Below, piece by piece: positions 24,055 to 60,615 of a DNA stretch of 64,000 nucleotides; the stretch's first letter is position 1, and each line of letters starts with the position of its first letter. Source of the DNA: Podarcis bocagei. Taxonomy: Eukaryota. The DNA lies in assembly GCA_964188305.1 (NCBI GenBank), contig OZ076889.1; one strand, written 5' to 3'. The position numbers and the translations under genes are program-made. A model generated the notes under the pieces. That model did no database searches and was not told where the DNA came from. It saw nothing but the letters and a program-made list of their open reading frames with translations.

Positions 24055-25217
24055 TACTGTCTTTTGGCTCTAGCAAGGTTTCAGAAGAGCCAAATCTCAA
24101 AACAGAAGGATTAAAAGCAAAAATAAAACAGTTCAAACTAAAAAATAACATTTGACTCCAACAGTGGACAACTAGACACATGTGCCTATGGTAGCTAATT
24201 GGGTGTATGCTGTGTTTTTGTATGAAAAAATAAGATATTTCTATAAATTTAACTCATTTCTTGTGAAATGATCTTTCTTAAATTCCCAATCTCCCCACCA
24301 AACCCAATTTCAGCATTGCATTCTCTGTCCTAGGCAAACGGACCACAACTTTTAGTGACTTTTCTCTCTGACACCCCCAACATTTACTTCTCACTTTGTA
24401 ACTGTTTCTCTGTTGTATTTGCTTTGCTATCATAAACCTCTCGGAGTTGTGTGGTTTGGTATCATACAGCATTACAGAACTGTTAAGAGAGATAAGATAT
24501 AAATACCGTATAATTATTCCACCACAGTTGAAACTTTTAGACCTTATCAAGACCCACAGGAAATAACTTGGCAGAAAGCCACCAAAACGTCCCCCTCCGC
24601 CTGTGTTTTCATTTTCTACTTTAATTGCTGTTAAAAACTGGGAATTAATTACTTTTTATCTCCTTGTCTTGGAAGTGTCATAGGGCCAAGTTAGGCATGG
24701 TGATGAATGTGTGGCTTGCTGTTGAAACACCCCACCCTTTCCCTAGTAACCTACCTGTGGATTGGCATCACATCACAGACTGGTCTATCACAAAGGAATG
24801 GTGGGAGGAACCAACTGGGGAACCCCCAAGGGAAGAAGGCTGAGAGCGTGGGGATTGGTGGTGGGACAATGTTGAGTGGTCAGAGGGAGAAGACTGGGAG
24901 GAGGTGTCAGAACCTGAAGAGGTAACAGCTTAGTGAGCAGGGGGAATCTGCGGCAGAGATCAGAAGTCCAGAATCAGAGACAGAGGCTAAAGCAGGAGAA
25001 GAGGGAGGCCAAGAGGCAGAGATGAGTCCACAAGGTGTCTCCTCATCCTGCTGTGACAAACGCCCCTCTCCCTAGTCTCCCAGAACCAGGAGCGGCATGA
25101 AGAGGCAGAGGAGAAGTTAGCTTCACACAGGCACAGTCTCAGTTTGCTTAGGAAAAACTCTGGAGGGGAGAGGACTTAGCCAGCTGTGTACAGTATCAGA
25201 ATCCTATATACATACGA

Positions 25218-25277
25218 GTGCTACTGGACAATTTATTTCGACTGCATCAGACCAACACGGCTACCTACCTGAATCTA
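25218..25277 (+). mobile_element. Short 3'-terminal stub of a related PLE pLTR
   Basis: GTGCTACTGGA...CAGACCAACACGGCTACCTAC matches the reverse complement of ~41615-41671. Confidence 0.7.
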
Positions 25278-28638: not shown

Positions 28639-29531
28639 CAGTGGTGCCTCGCAAGACGAAATTAATTTGTTCCGCAAGTTTTTTCTTCTTGCGAGTTTTT
28701 CGTCTTGCGAAGCACGGTTTCCCATAGGAATGCATTGAAAATCAATTAATGCGTTCCTATGGAAACCGCTTGCCAGGCTGGCGGTGCGGAGAAGGACTTT
28801 TCTCCCCACCGCAAGCCTTCAGGACAGGTACGGGAACAGAGGGGAAGGGGCACAGCGCTTCTCCTCTGTTCCCGGGGCTTGCGGTGGGAGGAGGGTTTTT
28901 CCTCCCCACCGCCAACATTCAGAACAGCATTCTGAATGTTGGCGGTGGGAAGGAAAACCCTCCTCCCACCGCAAGTCTTCAGGACAGCCATCCGAAGGCT
29001 GGCGTGGGGAGAAGGGCTTTCCGCCCCACCGCCAGCCTTCGGAGCAGCCTTCCGAAGGCTGGCGCGGGGAGAAGGGCTTTTCTCCCCACCACCAGCCTTC
29101 GGAGGAGCCTTCCGAAGGCTGGCGCGGGGAGAAGGGCTTTCCGCCCCACCGCCAGCCTTCGGAGGAGCCTTCCGAAGGCTGGCGCGGGGAGAAGGGCTTT
29201 CCGCCCCACCGCCAGCCTTCGGCGGAGCCTTCCGAAGGCTGGCGCGGGGAGAAGGGCTTTCCGCCCCACCGCCAGCCTTCGGAGGAGCCTTCCGAAGGCT
29301 GGCGCGGGGAGAAGGGCTTTCCGCCCCACCGCCAGCCTTCGGAGGAGGCCCGAGGACAGTGGGGAAGAAGCGCTGCGCTTCCCCGCTGTCCCGGAGATTT
29401 CCCTATGGGCTTTCTTCTTGCGAAGGAAGCCCATAGGGAAATTCGTTTTGCGAAGCGCCTCCAAAACGGAAAACCCTTTCGTCTAGCGGGTTTTCCGTCT
29501 TGCGAGGCGTTCGTCTTGCGGGGCACCACTG
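28639..29531 (+). mobile_element. Tc1/mariner (Tigger-like) MITE with an internal 60-bp tandem array
   Basis: TA|CAGTGGTGCCTCGCAAGACG...CGTCTTGCGGGGCACCACTG|TA. Confidence 0.9.
28990..29345. repeat. GC-rich 60-bp minisatellite, ~6 copies, internally palindromic
   Basis: Unit TCCGAAGGCTGGCGCGGGGAGAAGGGCTTTCCGCCCCACCGCCAGCCTTCGGAGGAGCCT repeats in register with the 60-nt lines. Confidence 0.95.
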
Positions 29532-30513: not shown

Positions 30514-30596
30514 AACTGTGANNNNNNNNNNNNNNNNNNNNNNNNNNNNNNNNNNNNNNNNNNNNNNNNNNNNNNNNNNNNNNNNNNNNNNNNNNN
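30514..30596 (+). CDS. DPYD: DPYD exon 3; only the first 8 nt are visible and the rest lies in the N-run (end inferred from the 83-bp orthologous exon)
   Basis: A T-rich tract and ttgcag|AAC TGT GA give N-C-E, the residues that follow exon 2 in DPYD (NCEKLENNFDD...), in the correct phase. Ns start at 30522. Confidence 0.8.
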
Positions 30597-30653
30597 NNNN
30601 NNNNNNNNNNNNNNNNNNNNNNNNNNNNNNNNNNNNNNNNNNNNNNNNNNNNN
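30522..30653. other. Assembly gap or masked run (132 N)
   Basis: Run of N. Confidence 1.
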
Positions 30654-40347: not shown

Positions 40348-41035
40348 GTCTGAAGCTGCAATTCTGCTCAGAGTTAGGTGTCCTCAAGCATTTTGAGATC
40401 AACCACCTTCGTTGGATAACAGCTTAGGGAAGGGACAGGAATTCAATTTGTGTAGCTTGCATTTTAGTGCGAACCCGGTTAATTTGCAATTCCCAAAACA
40501 ATGTGTGAACCACAATGCAGTTGCTCTTCAAAACTTGCACTTCTTCAAATTTTGCAATGCAATTATTCAAGCCAAAAATGTGTGCAAACCTGCATCTGTT
40601 AGGGGAAACAGCACAAAAAAATTGGCATACTAATGAAAATGACACAAAAAATGAATTACACTGGGGGAAATTGCTTGCAAAAATGCCTACATAACTGTAT
40701 TCTGACATTTGAAGAAATGTACACTAAAATGTGAGGGCTTTTTAAAAAATGAAAGTGCAAAGTGATACAGAAATGTGATGAACTGAGATTATGATTGGGA
40801 AAATGAGAAACTGAAGGATTTATCCATCCCTAATTAACAACTCAGGAACCTCAGTAGGCAAAGTGGTAACAGTAGTTTGATGGTATCATTTGTAGCTCTC
40901 CAAAATGAAGTTACCAAGCTGGTTAGGCTTCTAATGGAGAATTAGAAACTTCTACCTTTAAATATACGAATTAGCATTTCAAAACATTCCTAAATTTCCC
41001 CAGAATCTGGCTAAGCTGCAAGTTTGGGCACCAAG

Positions 41036-41559
41036 CATAGCTGTCAACTGTCCCTTATTTGGCAGGAAACTCCCTTATCCCAGCGGCGTGTCCCGCTGCT
41101 GCCCCTTATTGATGATGTCCCTTAAATTTCCCGGGTTTCAAAAGAAGCAGCTCCCCTCCCTCCCTCCCTGCTGGCCAGGGAGGAGGGAGGCTCCAACTGT
41201 GTTGCTTGGCTGTGTTGCTCACCCAATAAGGAGTCTAAGGACGACTGGGGGGGGTGGAGTTTGCATGCCTTGTGCCGATCAAATCGGCCGTGTTGCCTGG
41301 GGACTCGCCTTTGCTCAGCGCTTCCCAGTGGAGAGGTGTCGGTGGTTTTCCTTGATGCATCCCCTTTGCCGGGTTGCTGCGCTGTGGGAACCACCGCTTG
41401 AGGCTTCGTTTGGCTGCTGGCTGGGCTTTCTGCCTTTCGCTCGGAGGGGCTCAGAAGTTGAACATACCTGTGCTAGGAAAATCCCTTATTTTGGCTGCTG
41501 ATCCCTTATTTTTGAGGCTGCTGGTCCCTTATTTTCAAATCTGTAAGTTGACAGCTATG
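41036..41559. mobile_element. hAT-type MITE
   Basis: 14-bp TIR CATAGCTGTCAACT, perfect 8-bp TSD GCACCAAG (41028-41035 and 41560-41567), and subterminal TCCCTTAT repeats. Confidence 0.9.
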
Positions 41560-41631
41560 GCACCAAGCAACAAGTGGGGCTGGAACAACTGATAAGATAT
41601 GGCCTCAGTAGTAGATAGGTAGCCGTGTTGG
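41417..41631. repeat. Left arm of a 215-bp inverted repeat (host flank + PLE 3' end)
   Basis: Reverse complement of 43386-43600 with a single mismatch. Confidence 0.97.
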
Positions 41632-41698
41632 TCTGCCATAGTCAAAATAAAAAAAATCCTTCCAGTAGCACCTTAAAGACCAACTAAGTTAGTTCTTG

Positions 41699-41736
41699 GT
41701 ATGAGCTTTCGTGTGCATGCACACTTCTTCAGATAC
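41699..41736 (-). ncRNA. Minimal type I hammerhead ribozyme motif in the PLE pseudo-LTR
   Basis: The - strand reads GUAU-CUGAAGA-A-GUGUGCAUGCACAC-GAAA-GC-UC-AUAC. This gives stem I GUAU/AUAC, the CUGANGA core, a palindromic stem II, GAAA, and a vestigial palindromic stem III (AGCU) with a UC cleavage site. It is the form known from PLE pLTRs. Confidence 0.85.
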
Positions 41737-41760
41737 ACTGAAACAGAAGTTGCCAGATCC

Positions 41761-41769
41761 TTCTATATA
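41761..41769 (-). promoter_or_regulatory. TATA-like box of the PLE pLTR
   Basis: TATATAGAA on the - strand, about 25 nt upstream of hammerhead stem I. Confidence 0.45.
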
Positions 41770-41913
41770 GTGAGAAGGTGGGGAGGGGTGTTACTCAGAA
41801 GGGTGGTGGGAATGGGAGATAGGCAGATAGCTGAGAGAGCCTCTTGACGACTCTTAACGACTGTAATAGGTCTTACAGGAAAAGGCAAGGGGTGGGAAGG
41901 AGAAATGGTTTAG

Positions 41914-43366
41914 TTATGTATAGTGAGATAAGAATCCAATGTCTTTGTTCAGCCCAGGTCTTTCCATGGTTTTAAGTTTGGTAATGAGTTGTAATTCAGC
42001 AGCTTCTCTTTCCAGTCTATTTCTGAAATTCCTTTGTAGTAAAACAGCTACTTTGAGATCTTGTATAGAATGTCCTGGGAGATTGAAGTGTTCTCCTACT
42101 GGTTTCTCTGTTCTGTGATTCTTGATGTCAGATTTATGTCCGTTTATTCTTTGGCGTAAGGTTTGGCCTGTTTGTCCAATATAGAGAGCTGAAGGACACT
42201 GTTGGCATTTGATGGCATACACAATGTTAGACGATGAGCAATTAAATAGTCCCGAGATGGTATGTGTGATGTTGTTGGGGCCAGTAATGGTGTTGTCCGG
42301 GTGTATGTGGCAGCAAAGTTGGCATCTGGGTTTATTGCAGGCTCTGGTGCCAGTGTCTGTGTTAAGTCTGGTTGTAGTATTATTGTGGGTTAGGAGTTGT
42401 TTAAGATTGGGTGGCTGTCTGTAGGCAATGAAAGGTCTTCCTCCCAGAGCTTGAGAAAGAGAACTGTCATTGTCCAGGAGAGGTTGTAGATCTCTGATGA
42501 TGCGTTGTACTGTTTTAACTTGGGAGCTGTATGTGATGACTAGAGGTGTTCTGTTATTTTCTTTTTTGGGTCTGTCTTGCAGCAAGTTCTCTCTGGGTAT
42601 CAGTCTGGCTCTGTTGATCTGTTGTCTAACTTCATCTGCTGGGTATTTTAGTTCTGAGAAGGTTTGCTGTAGATCCCTTAGGTGAGAGTCTCTGTCTGTA
42701 GAATTGGAACAGATGCGGCTGTAACGTAGTGCCTGGCTATATACAATGGACTGTTTGGTATGTTTGGGATGGTAGCTAGAGGCATGTAGATATGTTTGTC
42801 GGTCAGTTGGTTTGCGGTATAAGGTGGTGTCTATGCGCCCATCCTCTATTTTTATAGTAGTGTCCAAAAAATGTATTTCTTGCATAGATTGATTCATTGT
42901 AAGGTTGATTGTGGGGTGAAAATCATTAAATTTCTGGTGAAAGGTGTCCAGGGTCTGTTGACCATGTGTCCAGATGATAAAAATATCGTCAATGTATCGC
43001 AGGTACAAGAGAGGTTTGAGTGGGTAGGAGTTCAGAAAACGTTGTTCTAAATCTGCCATGAAGATGTTGGCATACTGTGGGGCCATGCGGGTGCCCATTG
43101 CTGTGCCGCTGATCTGAAGAAACAGGTCATCACCGAATTTGAAGTTGTTGTGGGTAAGGACAAATTGGCAGAGTTTAGTGGCAAGGTCCGCTGTGGTTTT
43201 ATCTGATATGGTGTTCCTTATAGCTTGTAAACCATCGTTGTGTGGGATGTTGGTATACAGAGATTCCACATCCATAGTAGCTAGTATAGTATTGTTGGGA
43301 AGATTATTTAAAGATTGTATTTTCCTCAGAAAATCTGTGGTGTCACGTACATAGCTGGGAGCATTG
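41914..43366 (-). CDS. PLE reverse transcriptase + Cys-rich linker + GIY-YIG endonuclease; N-terminally truncated, no internal stops
   Basis: RT motifs ILATMDVESLYTNIPH, GTAMGTRMAPQYANIFM and YLRYIDDIF; PLE thumb motif TLYRKPTD. Linker CNKPRCQLCCHI...FNC is the Cys-rich type associated with Neptune. GIY-YIG motif NIVYAIKC..LYIGQTG..R..H..E. The first ~9 residues of the ORF-track protein come from junction DNA. Confidence 0.92.
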
Positions 43367-43385
43367 ATCTCTGTATACCAACATC

Positions 43386-43600
43386 CCAACACGGCTACCT
43401 ATCTACTACTGAGGCCATATCTTGTCAGTTGTTCCAGCCCCACTTGTTGCTTGGTGCCATAGCTGTCAACTTACAGATTTGAAAATAAGGGACCAGCAGC
43501 CTCAAAAATAAGGGATCAGCAGCCAAAATAAGGGATTTTCCTAGCACAGGTATGTTCAACTTCTGAGCCCCTCCGAGCGAAAGGCAGAAAGCCCAGCCAG
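43386..43600. repeat. Right arm of the 215-bp inverted repeat
   Basis: Reverse complement of 41417-41631, 214/215 identical by manual alignment. Confidence 0.97.
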
Positions 43601-43893
43601 AATGCTGTTCTGAATGTTGGCGGTGGGGAGGAAAAACCCTCCTCCCACTGCAAGCCCCGGGAACAGAGGAGAAGCGCTGCGCCCCTTCCCCTCTATTCCC
43701 GTACCTGTCCTGAAGGCTTGCGGTGGGGAGAAAAGCCCTTATCCGCACCGCCAGCCTGGCAAGCGGTTTCCATAGGAACACATTAATTGATTTTCAATGC
43801 ATTCCTATGGGAAACCGTGCTTCGCAAGACGAAAAACTCACAAGAAGAAAAAACTTGCGGAACAAATTAATTTCGTCTTGCGAGGCACCACTG
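43598..43893 (-). mobile_element. One-ended fragment of a Tc1/mariner (Tigger-like) MITE, same family as 28639-29531
   Basis: Near-identical reverse complement of 28639-~28934. Ends GAGGCACCACTG|TA; the other end is missing. Confidence 0.9.
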
Positions 43894-44139
43894 TATGCAT
43901 AATCAACTAAATATATGGTATGCGGCCCCTTTATGAGAAACGGTTATGATTCAAGAGACCAGCTCCTGGAGAGCTGAGTGAGAGGTGTTGCCTGGCTATC
44001 TTATTAAAGATAGAATTATCAAACATAGAATTCCAAACAAGAAAAAGAAATCTTGTTGAAGACCAAGCGGTAATGCTTCTATACTGATGTCCTCCTGTCT
44101 AACTGGTTGGTTTTTTGTTTTTTTTTAGCATGTAAACAA

Positions 44140-47825: not shown

Positions 47826-48271
47826 GAAAAGATGGAAAGCTCTTTAATCTGAGCAGGCTGAAAGCAGAGTAAGGTTACCATAACTTCCTTCACAGAGCTT
47901 CAGTATGCCAATGACAACGTAGTGTGTGCGCACTCAGAGGATGACCTCCAGACCATCCTAAATATCTTTGCAGAAGCTTACGAAAAGCTTGGCCTATCTC
48001 TCAACATCCAAAAAACCAAAGTTCTACACCAACAAGTACAAAACAACCCCTCTGCAGCTTCACAAATCCAACTCAATGGTGTAACATTGGAAAATGTCGA
48101 TCATTTCTCCTACCTGGGCAGTTATCTTTCCACAAGGGCCGACAATGATGCTGAAATTCAGCACCGCCTGAGCTCTGCGAGTGAGGCTTTCTCCCGGTTG
48201 AAGTGCAGAGTGTTTGAGGACCAGGACATTCACAGGGAAACCCAAATGCTTGTTTACACAGCTATTGTACT
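47826..48271 (+). mobile_element. RTE-clade LINE RT fragment
   Basis: DGKLFNLSRL, LQYANDNVVCAHS, GLSLNIQKTKV, LENVDHFSYLGS. Confidence 0.88.
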
Positions 48272-48303
48272 AAGACAATCTTATTTGAGTACGAGTTATT
48301 GCC

Positions 48304-48357
48304 GAAGAAGAAGAAGAAGAAGAAGAAGAAGAAGAAGAAGAAGAAGAAGAAGAAGAA
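48304..48357. repeat. (GAA)n microsatellite
   Basis: Seen directly. Confidence 0.95.
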
Positions 48358-48912
48358 ACCAGAGGCCTTTCTTCTTGGAATAATAGGTTTGGAATTGCCC
48401 AAAAAAGATGTTAGATTGTTTTTGTGTGCCACAACTACTGCTAGGATTTTGTTGGCCAAAAATGGGAAAACACAAGAAGTGCCAACAGTGGAGGAATGGC
48501 AAAAGAAGATGATGGATTTTTGGGAGCTAGCCAACCTGACCGGAAGAGTCCGCAACCAGAAGGAGGAGGAGTATCAGGAGGAATGGATGAAATTTAAAGA
48601 CTATTTAGCTAAATATGCTAAGATAACTTAAATAGAAATACTTGCAAATACCAGATTAGTTTAGGATTAAATATGTGATGTTGTAGAATAATATGTCTAA
48701 AGTTAATATGAAAAGAAAGAAAGATGTTAATTGACTAAGTAAATTTTATGAGAAATTAGTTTTGGAAAACTGTTACAATGATATACTTTGAAACTCAGCC
48801 AGGAGGATTCAAGTAAGTCACCTAACAATGTTAACAATAGTGGAACAATTATAGTTAGGATTTATGTTTGTTTGTTTATAAATTTGGAAAATCAATAAAA
48901 AAAATTTGAAAA
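48357..48912 (+). mobile_element. L1/Tx1-clade LINE 3' fragment
   Basis: PEAFLLGII...ARILLAK...W...W.KF.DYL C-terminus, AT-rich 3' UTR, AATAAA and an A-rich tail. Confidence 0.8.
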
Positions 48913-60484: not shown

Positions 60485-60615
60485 NNNNNNNNNNNNNNNN
60501 NNNNNNNNNNNNNNNNNNNNNNNNNNNNNNNNNNNNNNNNNNNNNNNNNNNNNNNNNNNNNNNNNNNNNNNNNNNNNNNNNNNNNNNNNNNNNNNNNNNN
60601 NNNNNNNNNNNNNNN
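60485..60615. other. Assembly gap or masked run (131 N)
   Basis: Run of N. Confidence 1.

Follow-up and report, generated by a model that had tools for sequence, protein, structure and literature searches.

Insertions of Penelope-like elements (PLEs) often have an inverted, 5′-truncated copy and a tail of 30-40 bp at one end, by a mechanism that has been left undefined (Craig et al. 2021, PMC8557442; the concept of the tail is also found in PMC11167929). Palindromes at the inversion point of PLEs have led to a self-priming hypothesis, and the capture of host DNA by these elements has been proposed to occur via read-through transcripts and template jumps (Arkhipova et al. 2013, PMC3846280). 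Here we describe a 5′-truncated PLE in a stretch of 64,000 nucleotides from the genome of the lizard Podarcis bocagei (GenBank assembly GCA_964188305.1, contig OZ076889.1; this whole stretch is called the window below). The 5′ junction of this element contains an inverted copy of the host DNA that flanks its own 3′ end.

The purified PLE protein of Anolis has been shown to cut both strands and to extend them (Frangieh et al. 2024, PMC11167929). Reverse transcription by this protein begins at two internal positions of an AC-rich stem-loop, and what lies between them is the tail (PMC11167929). For the human retrotransposon L1, a short fold-back inverted duplication of the target flank was reported in 0.3-0.4% of somatic insertions, where 52-220 bp were synthesized in addition (Nam et al. 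2023, PMC10191854). In L1 expression experiments, deletions, inverted duplications, templated inserts and fold-backs were observed and were explained by a cDNA end that anneals to itself following 5′ resection (Mendez-Dorantes et al. 2024, PMC11702581). The ideas that compete to explain the tandem and inverted ends of PLEs are self-priming and priming on both strands. The self-priming hypothesis and inverted PLE copies are reportedly the subject of work by Arkhipova (2006), L1 twin priming is said to have been described by Ostertag and Kazazian (2001), and L1 target-site deletions reportedly by Gilbert et al. (2002 and 2005).

The window locus shares features with each of these systems. As in L1 process C (PMC10191854), a rare, DNA-templated event associated with retrotransposition and attributed to extra synthesis during resolution, about 200 bp of adjacent host DNA is present in inverted orientation at the 5′ junction of the element; in the window this copy comprises 196 nt of host DNA plus 19 nt of the element, and 214 of the 215 positions match. 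In contrast to L1 process C, the window element is a PLE (GIY-YIG endonuclease, internal start of reverse transcription), the copied flank is that of the 3′ junction and includes the 19 nt of element, which fixes the order of events, and the copy is combined with a second insert of 22 nt and an apparent deletion. Similar to the inverted PLE copies and pseudo-long terminal repeats (pLTRs) described before (PMC3846280, PMC8557442), the window locus has an inverted piece that lies head to head with the 5′ end of the PLE. In the known PLE inversions, the inversion point is marked by small palindromes or by microhomology, and a tail is present at one end only. Inversions of this form were also seen in two related copies (L003 and L004, see below). 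However, these inversions consist of element sequence only, whereas the window piece contains 19 + 22 nt of element and 196 nt of host flank.

Twin priming and the two-strand extension seen in Anolis are alike in that a second priming yields an inverted segment, which is joined to the first cDNA via microhomology. An inversion copied from element RNA cannot on its own provide host flank, however, and only the 19- and 22-nt pieces in the window qualify as products of twin priming or of target-primed reverse transcription (TPRT) on two strands, the 196-nt host part being foreign to normal element RNA. Twin priming could be a component step of the window junction. In L1 fold-backs (PMC11702581), an end extended by TPRT is resected, anneals to itself and is then joined through microhomology, and deletions and templated inserts arise at the site, which resembles the situation in the window. 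Those fold-backs are chromosome-scale and somatic and come from cell lines and cancers, whereas the window event is local, covers 215 bp and is found in the germline of a lizard. The window event is best read as a rare by-product of retrotransposon insertion, of a kind already known for L1 and anticipated for PLEs. In the literature we found no earlier case of an inverted copy of host flank in the PLE class. The event is nevertheless less novel than an earlier reading of the window made from the letters alone (the sequence-only reading) would suggest, because human L1 is already known to leave short fold-back duplications of the flank and because a self-priming hypothesis exists for PLEs.

The inverted host flank and the junctions of the element

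The positions 41417-41631 (arm A) and 43386-43600 (arm B), both given on the plus strand, are reverse-complementary at 214 of 215 bases, as was found in a repeat scan and by direct reading. The sole mismatch is at 41593 (T) versus 43424. The next bases beyond both ends of the arms mismatch, and the repeat cannot be extended by even one base. Arm A is composed of 142 nt from the right end of a miniature inverted-repeat transposable element (MITE), the 8-nt target-site duplication (TSD) of this MITE, 46 nt of unique host flank at 41567-41612 and, as its last part, 19 nt of PLE tail. The estimate of the sequence-only reading, about 20 nt of PLE and about 195 nt of host DNA, could be refined to 19 nt of element (41613-41631) and 196 nt of host DNA by comparison with the DNA of four lacertid copies of the same family (L001-L004; Podarcis and Zootoca; two further copies, L007 and L008, are more distant). 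The repeat runs over the PLE/host junction without any indel. Because it spans this junction, the 215-nt copy was made after the junction existed.

The MITE in arm A is a host repeat that was present before the PLE. It is located at 41038-41558, has perfect 13-bp terminal inverted repeats (TIRs; CATAGCTGTCAAC) and is flanked by an 8-bp TSD (GCACCAAG) at 41030-41037 and 41559-41566. Based on the length of the TSD and the form of the TIRs, we take it to be of the hAT type, and no second copy of it was found within the window. Because its TSD pair is intact, 41417-41566 is original DNA in situ. The right TIR and TSD lie within the repeat, as had been read before. Since arm A directly adjoins the remainder of the MITE, which keeps both TSDs, the original is arm A and the copy is arm B. 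The reverse assignment, with arm B as the original, was ruled out for the same reason, and so was the possibility that both arms are 3′-transduced sequence from a source locus. We also considered whether the 215-bp segment belongs to the family consensus, which the sequence-only reading had named as a check. This is not the case, since four other family copies part from the window at 41613, which leaves 196 nt of in-situ host DNA, and since the segment contains the MITE end and its TSD. Because host DNA is absent from element RNA, the host part of the copy required either a DNA template or read-through RNA of the same locus.

The PLE itself is on the minus strand and comprises 1756 nt, from the 5′ break at 43368 to the 3′ end at 41613; both limits were set by the family copies. 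The window copy, a fragment at 25213-25270 and the copies L003A (the right copy of L003) and L004 have a common end ...CAGACCAACACGGCTACCT, followed by a few more bases and then by full divergence. Because the family copies with this end diverge there, the 3′ end was placed at 41613. At the other side, homology to L001 and L002 ends at 43368, and beyond this position the family copies go on into further reverse transcriptase (RT) sequence. The sequence-only reading had recognized this boundary but had put it at about 43366; the position of 43368 adds an overlap of two nucleotides at the first junction.

Between the element and arm B lies a 22-nt inverted piece (43367-43388, plus strand), which is the exact reverse complement of 43243-43264 (plus strand) within the element and cannot be lengthened at either end. 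Its source is also identical in L001 and hence is not diagnostic of a template in cis. Exact inverted matches of 22 nt and 215 nt cannot be attributed to chance. All three junctions contain microhomology. At junction 1, 2 nt (AT, 43367-43368) are common to the PLE end and the 22-nt piece, at junction 2, 3 nt (CCA, 43386-43388) are common to the 22-nt piece and arm B, and at junction 3, 3 nt (CAG, 43598-43600) are common to the end of arm B and a mariner-like MITE. The fold-back, the inverted copy and the CCA and CAG overlaps had all been reported by the sequence-only reading and were reproduced here without change. As a rough estimate, the joint chance of microhomologies of 2, 3 and 3 nt under random blunt joining is ~4e-4. 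The inserted pieces have their templates at distances of 102 nt and 1.75 kb, and both templates belong to one strand of this locus.

Downstream of arm B, only the right 296 nt of the mariner-like MITE are present (43598-43893, plus strand), with TA at 43894-43895. A full-length, TA-flanked paralogue of 893 bp at 28639-29531 (minus strand) served as the reference for the cut at 43598. The sequence from 43598 is 97.7% identical to this paralogue over 298 nt, and the first ~597 nt of the paralogue are absent. The MITE is cut 2-5 nt from the loop of a perfect hairpin with a 20-bp stem (loop 43603-43607, right arm 43608-43627). Relocation of the missing MITE part to a nearby position was ruled out, as the window holds no further copy besides the paralogue at 28.6-29.5 kb. 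In agreement with the sequence-only reading, no TSD of the PLE insertion could be defined.

An open reading frame (ORF) of 492 amino acids (41914-43392, minus strand) encodes RT and GIY-YIG domains from residue ~9 onwards, and its first eight codons are made up of the 22-nt piece and arm B. The RVT_1 match (2.9e-12) covers residues 25-168 and profile positions 57-186, and the protein is therefore N-terminally truncated. The GIY-YIG match (1.8e-5; residues 390-438) lies C-terminal to the RT. The best homologues of this ORF are reptile PLE-type proteins with PF00078, PF26215 and PF01541. Judged by the predicted order of an RT followed by a C-terminal GIY-YIG domain, the element is an EN+ PLE of the Penelope/Poseidon type found in reptiles. 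An optional tail and inverted 5′ structures, both known for PLEs, are also present in this family: a tail of ~29 nt was found in the window copy, L003A and L004, and inverted structures were found in L003 and L004. In the window, the tail, an optional 3′ extension of ~30 nt defined by family alignment, is located at 41613-41641 (minus strand) and includes CAGACCAACACGG.

The 3′ untranslated part of the PLE contains a candidate hammerhead-like core that was read by eye (41707-41732, minus strand; CUGAAGA, a palindromic stem II, then GAAA) and that is conserved in L003 and L004. Searches of Rfam gave no match to this candidate core, neither at the gathering threshold nor at E<=10, and the RNA fold of the PLE 3′ region was not better than that of shuffled sequences (z = 0.25).

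Related copies and the age of the insertion

A protein search with the window element identified a 99% identical protein in a Logan assembly and a 90% cluster spanning Podarcis raffonei, P. muralis and Zootoca vivipara. Turtle proteins came next, with ~70% identity. The window PLE is 98.3% identical to L001, ~96% identical to L003 and ~87% identical to L002 and L004. The Logan contigs L001, L005 and L006 are collapsed contigs of element sequence only.

Complex inverted structures were found at two of the family copies. In Podarcis raffonei (CM049750.1), L003:1807-6080 is a head-to-head PLE pair with arms of 2102 nt that are ~100% identical and are separated by a 41-nt spacer, which is itself element sequence. 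An extra 29-nt tail is present on the right copy (L003A) only and is missing from its inverted partner (L003B). Since equal arms and a short loop are expected from copying back a cDNA, L003 looks like the result of snap-back copying of one cDNA, and not like two independent insertions. In Zootoca vivipara (OY735903.1), L004:3947-5345 is a 5′-truncated PLE with two inverted pieces of 58 + 29 nt at its 5′ junction. The 58-nt piece comes from the element's own 3′ region, and the 29-nt piece lies across the truncation point and includes 14 nt upstream of where the sense copy begins. Because of this excess of 14 nt, the 29-nt piece was templated by RNA and not copied from the first cDNA, and the L004 junction fits twin priming. 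This junction shows that, in the family of the window PLE, there is also a second cDNA that is copied from RNA and contains an internal jump. The 19 + 22-nt element pieces in the window parallel this two-piece layout. Flank-inverting copies were absent among L002, L003, L004, L007 and L008, a set too small (n=5) to give a rate, and L007 and L008 had no inverted structure of any kind.

When the window copy was compared with L001 and L003A, we found 23 private substitutions in 1453 nt (1.6%), 18 of which are synonymous. This proportion indicates that the private substitutions mostly arose before the insertion, in an active lineage, and that there has been little decay since the insertion, which agrees with the single mismatch in the 215-nt arms. 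On this evidence the element and the duplication are both young, and the recent date suggested by the sequence-only reading is supported; the relative order of the two is not given by the sequence. An attempt to date the duplication after the insertion from the comparison of 1.6% with 1/215 was dropped, because with 18 of 23 substitutions synonymous they are older than the insertion, which makes the comparison uninformative. Position 43364, which is 4 nt away from the break at the 5′ end of the element, has a private G-to-A substitution (Ser to Asn) that may be a polymerase error near a switch or an ordinary mutation.

Formation of the junction

On balance, we favour a single event coupled to integration, in which snap-back or second-strand synthesis was followed by microhomology-mediated joining with a deletion. 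In such an event, the plus-strand 3′ hydroxyl at 41612 would prime reverse transcription of the PLE RNA from the distal (tail) start site. The first-strand cDNA, which corresponds to the plus strand, would extend from 41613 to 43368 and then leave the RNA, after which the junction would be built by templated synthesis on DNA of the same locus. Pairing of 2 nt (AT) could first prime a copy of 20-22 nt, from 43264 back to 43243. A 3-nt pairing of TGG with CCA would then restart synthesis 19 nt inside the 3′ end of the element, and this synthesis would cross the cDNA/host junction and continue as far as 41417, 196 nt beyond it, in a flank that had probably been made single-stranded by 5′ resection. 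In the last step, the other broken end would capture the new end via the 3-nt CAG, at the tip of the hairpin in the mariner-like MITE, with the loss of at least ~600 bp and without formation of a TSD. The same product might be made on the other strand: the end at 43601 would prime on the left flank and copy to the break, the RNA start site would be copied for 19 nt, followed by 22 nt, and the product would then pair with the first cDNA.

The sequence-only reading had proposed three serial template switches, of which two are supported as templated switches, while the third is a microhomology-mediated end join. It had also proposed that the nascent strand copied back over its own integration junction. 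Copying after initiation of the first strand is supported by the repeat that spans the junction, whereas the timing and the strand that was copying lie beyond the sequence.

Several findings support a single integration-coupled event. All templates are on one strand of the locus, and all three junctions have microhomologies of 2-3 nt. The restart point 19 nt inside the element falls within ~1% of the available span of ~2 kb. With RNA still covering the body of the cDNA, a restart near the element end would be expected; under an unrelated later break it would be a coincidence. In addition, complex inverted 5′ junctions recur in the same PLE family at unrelated loci (L003 and L004). The indel-free passage of the repeat over the PLE/host junction, the compatible ages of the element and the duplication, and the behaviour of PLEs and L1 described in the literature are likewise in line with such an event. 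The AT, CCA and CAG overlaps together with nearby templates in cis are also what microhomology-mediated templated repair leaves, of the type of polymerase theta (Pol theta) snap-back or microhomology-mediated break-induced replication (MMBIR).

Other points weigh against this scenario. The 22-nt piece was templated within the expected RNA:cDNA hybrid, which weakens the argument that RNA protected the cDNA if this piece was copied from cDNA rather than from RNA. The event is represented by a single locus, known from an assembly without read-level support or an empty site, and neither L003 nor L004 has a copied host flank. Synthesis at integration and repair of a later break leave the same sequence, and the deletion is deduced from the paralogue alone. 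The same product can indeed be reached in three other ways, namely by second-strand synthesis from the other broken end, by snap-back repair of a later break and by reverse transcription of a read-through transcript.

Among these, repair of a later break is unlikely. According to this explanation, a normal PLE insertion, with a longer 5′ part or simply truncated, would later have suffered a double-strand break near 43368, which was mended by templated synthesis. The resected plus strand would serve as the template of this repair, in a snap-back or microhomology-mediated mode (Pol theta-type or MMBIR-type), and the end would be joined to 43601 with a deletion. Nearby inverted templated inserts and microhomologies of 2-3 nt are classic signs of microhomology-mediated templated repair. 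The 22-nt inverted insert, templated from 102 nt away, and the 2-3-nt microhomologies fit this, and the right breakpoint at the tip of the 20-bp MITE hairpin is a plausible site of a spontaneous break. The identity of the arms (214/215) would permit any recent date. However, about 2 kb of resection would be required, the second template would be located 19 nt inside the element end by coincidence (~1-2% by position), and the complex inverted 5′ junctions at other loci of the family would be left unexplained.

We regard it as rather improbable that arms A and B stem from an older fold-back that truncated the mariner-like MITE, and that the PLE inserted at the centre of this pre-existing, near-perfect palindrome. 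Priming would then have occurred on both strands, with one long cDNA and a short two-piece cDNA (19 + 22 nt) as in L004. The cleavage and extension of both strands by the PLE protein would allow this, palindrome centres are break-prone, and the 19 + 22 nt resemble the two pieces of L004 (58 + 29 nt), of which the second is necessarily RNA-templated. On the other hand, two rare events would be needed at one nucleotide, and long palindromes without a spacer are unstable. Moreover, both cDNAs would have to start from the same RNA base with symmetric cuts, whereas the ends in L003, L004 and the literature usually differ by the tail.

An RNA-templated patch is very unlikely. Here a resident PLE would have been transcribed past its 3′ end into the flank, and this RNA would have been reverse transcribed from the 3′ hydroxyl at 43601, in the order of 215 nt, a jump and 22 nt, to bridge a break beside the resident copy. 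The plus strand of arm B does read as sense tail plus downstream flank, like a read-through transcript, and such transcripts with template jumps have been proposed for the capture of host DNA by PLEs (PMC3846280). However, the window copy is 5′-truncated and hence has no pLTR promoter, and the patch would require more assumptions than DNA-templated copying, namely that a copy was resident, that a break occurred and that priming was internal, at a match of 3 nt. Least probable of all is an assembly or library artefact from a chimeric or fold-back read that entered the consensus: assemblies are known to struggle with tandem and inverted PLE structures (PMC8557442) and exact look-ups of nine ORFs across the window junctions gave no independent contig in the collection, but fold-back reads make single-point palindromes, not a 22-nt piece, three microhomologies and a mismatch together with arms separated by 1.75 kb, and the layout agrees with natural junctions in assemblies of other species.

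It is conceivable, and put forward here as a tentative idea, that DNA-templated self-priming is a regular step of PLE integration. The nascent strand or the reciprocal end would copy the integration intermediate, which would normally build inverted pLTRs or head-to-head copies and would occasionally run through the TPRT junction into the resected chromosome. If so, lacertid genomes would repeatedly acquire short inverted duplications together with deletions from PLEs. Because host DNA is not contained in element RNA, inverted copies that run from the tail into the chromosome must stem from DNA of the insertion site or from a read-through transcript of the locus and are natural tracers, and such junction-spanning copies would be a natural marker to separate DNA- from RNA-templated models of PLE inverted repeats. 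Their frequency would gauge the DNA-templated share of PLE integration and of small inverted duplications and deletions in reptile genomes. Taken alone, the single window locus is an anecdote that agrees with what has been documented for L1, and its value lies in being a clean natural PLE example and a search image. The two arms of the 215-bp repeat could in addition recombine with each other, and the 1.75 kb that separates them would then be inverted; since the outcome is a structure of the same type, the reading is unaffected.

Further repeats and fragments in the window

The paralogue of the mariner-like MITE (28639-29531) contains ~7 tandem units of 60 bp, and several long spurious ORFs cross this array. 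It also contains a perfect 45-nt hairpin with arms at 28949-28930 and 28924-28905. In ten long ORFs of the window, no host exon was recognized. Runs of N are present at 30522-30653 and 60485-60615, distant from the PLE insertion. The PLE fragment at 25213-25270 (plus strand, ~58 nt) consists of only the 3′ end with the tail and represents an extreme 5′ truncation; no inverted flank was found near it. Finally, an ORF at 47922-48383 (plus strand) has a weak RVT_1 match (E 0.004) and is probably a remnant of another retroelement.

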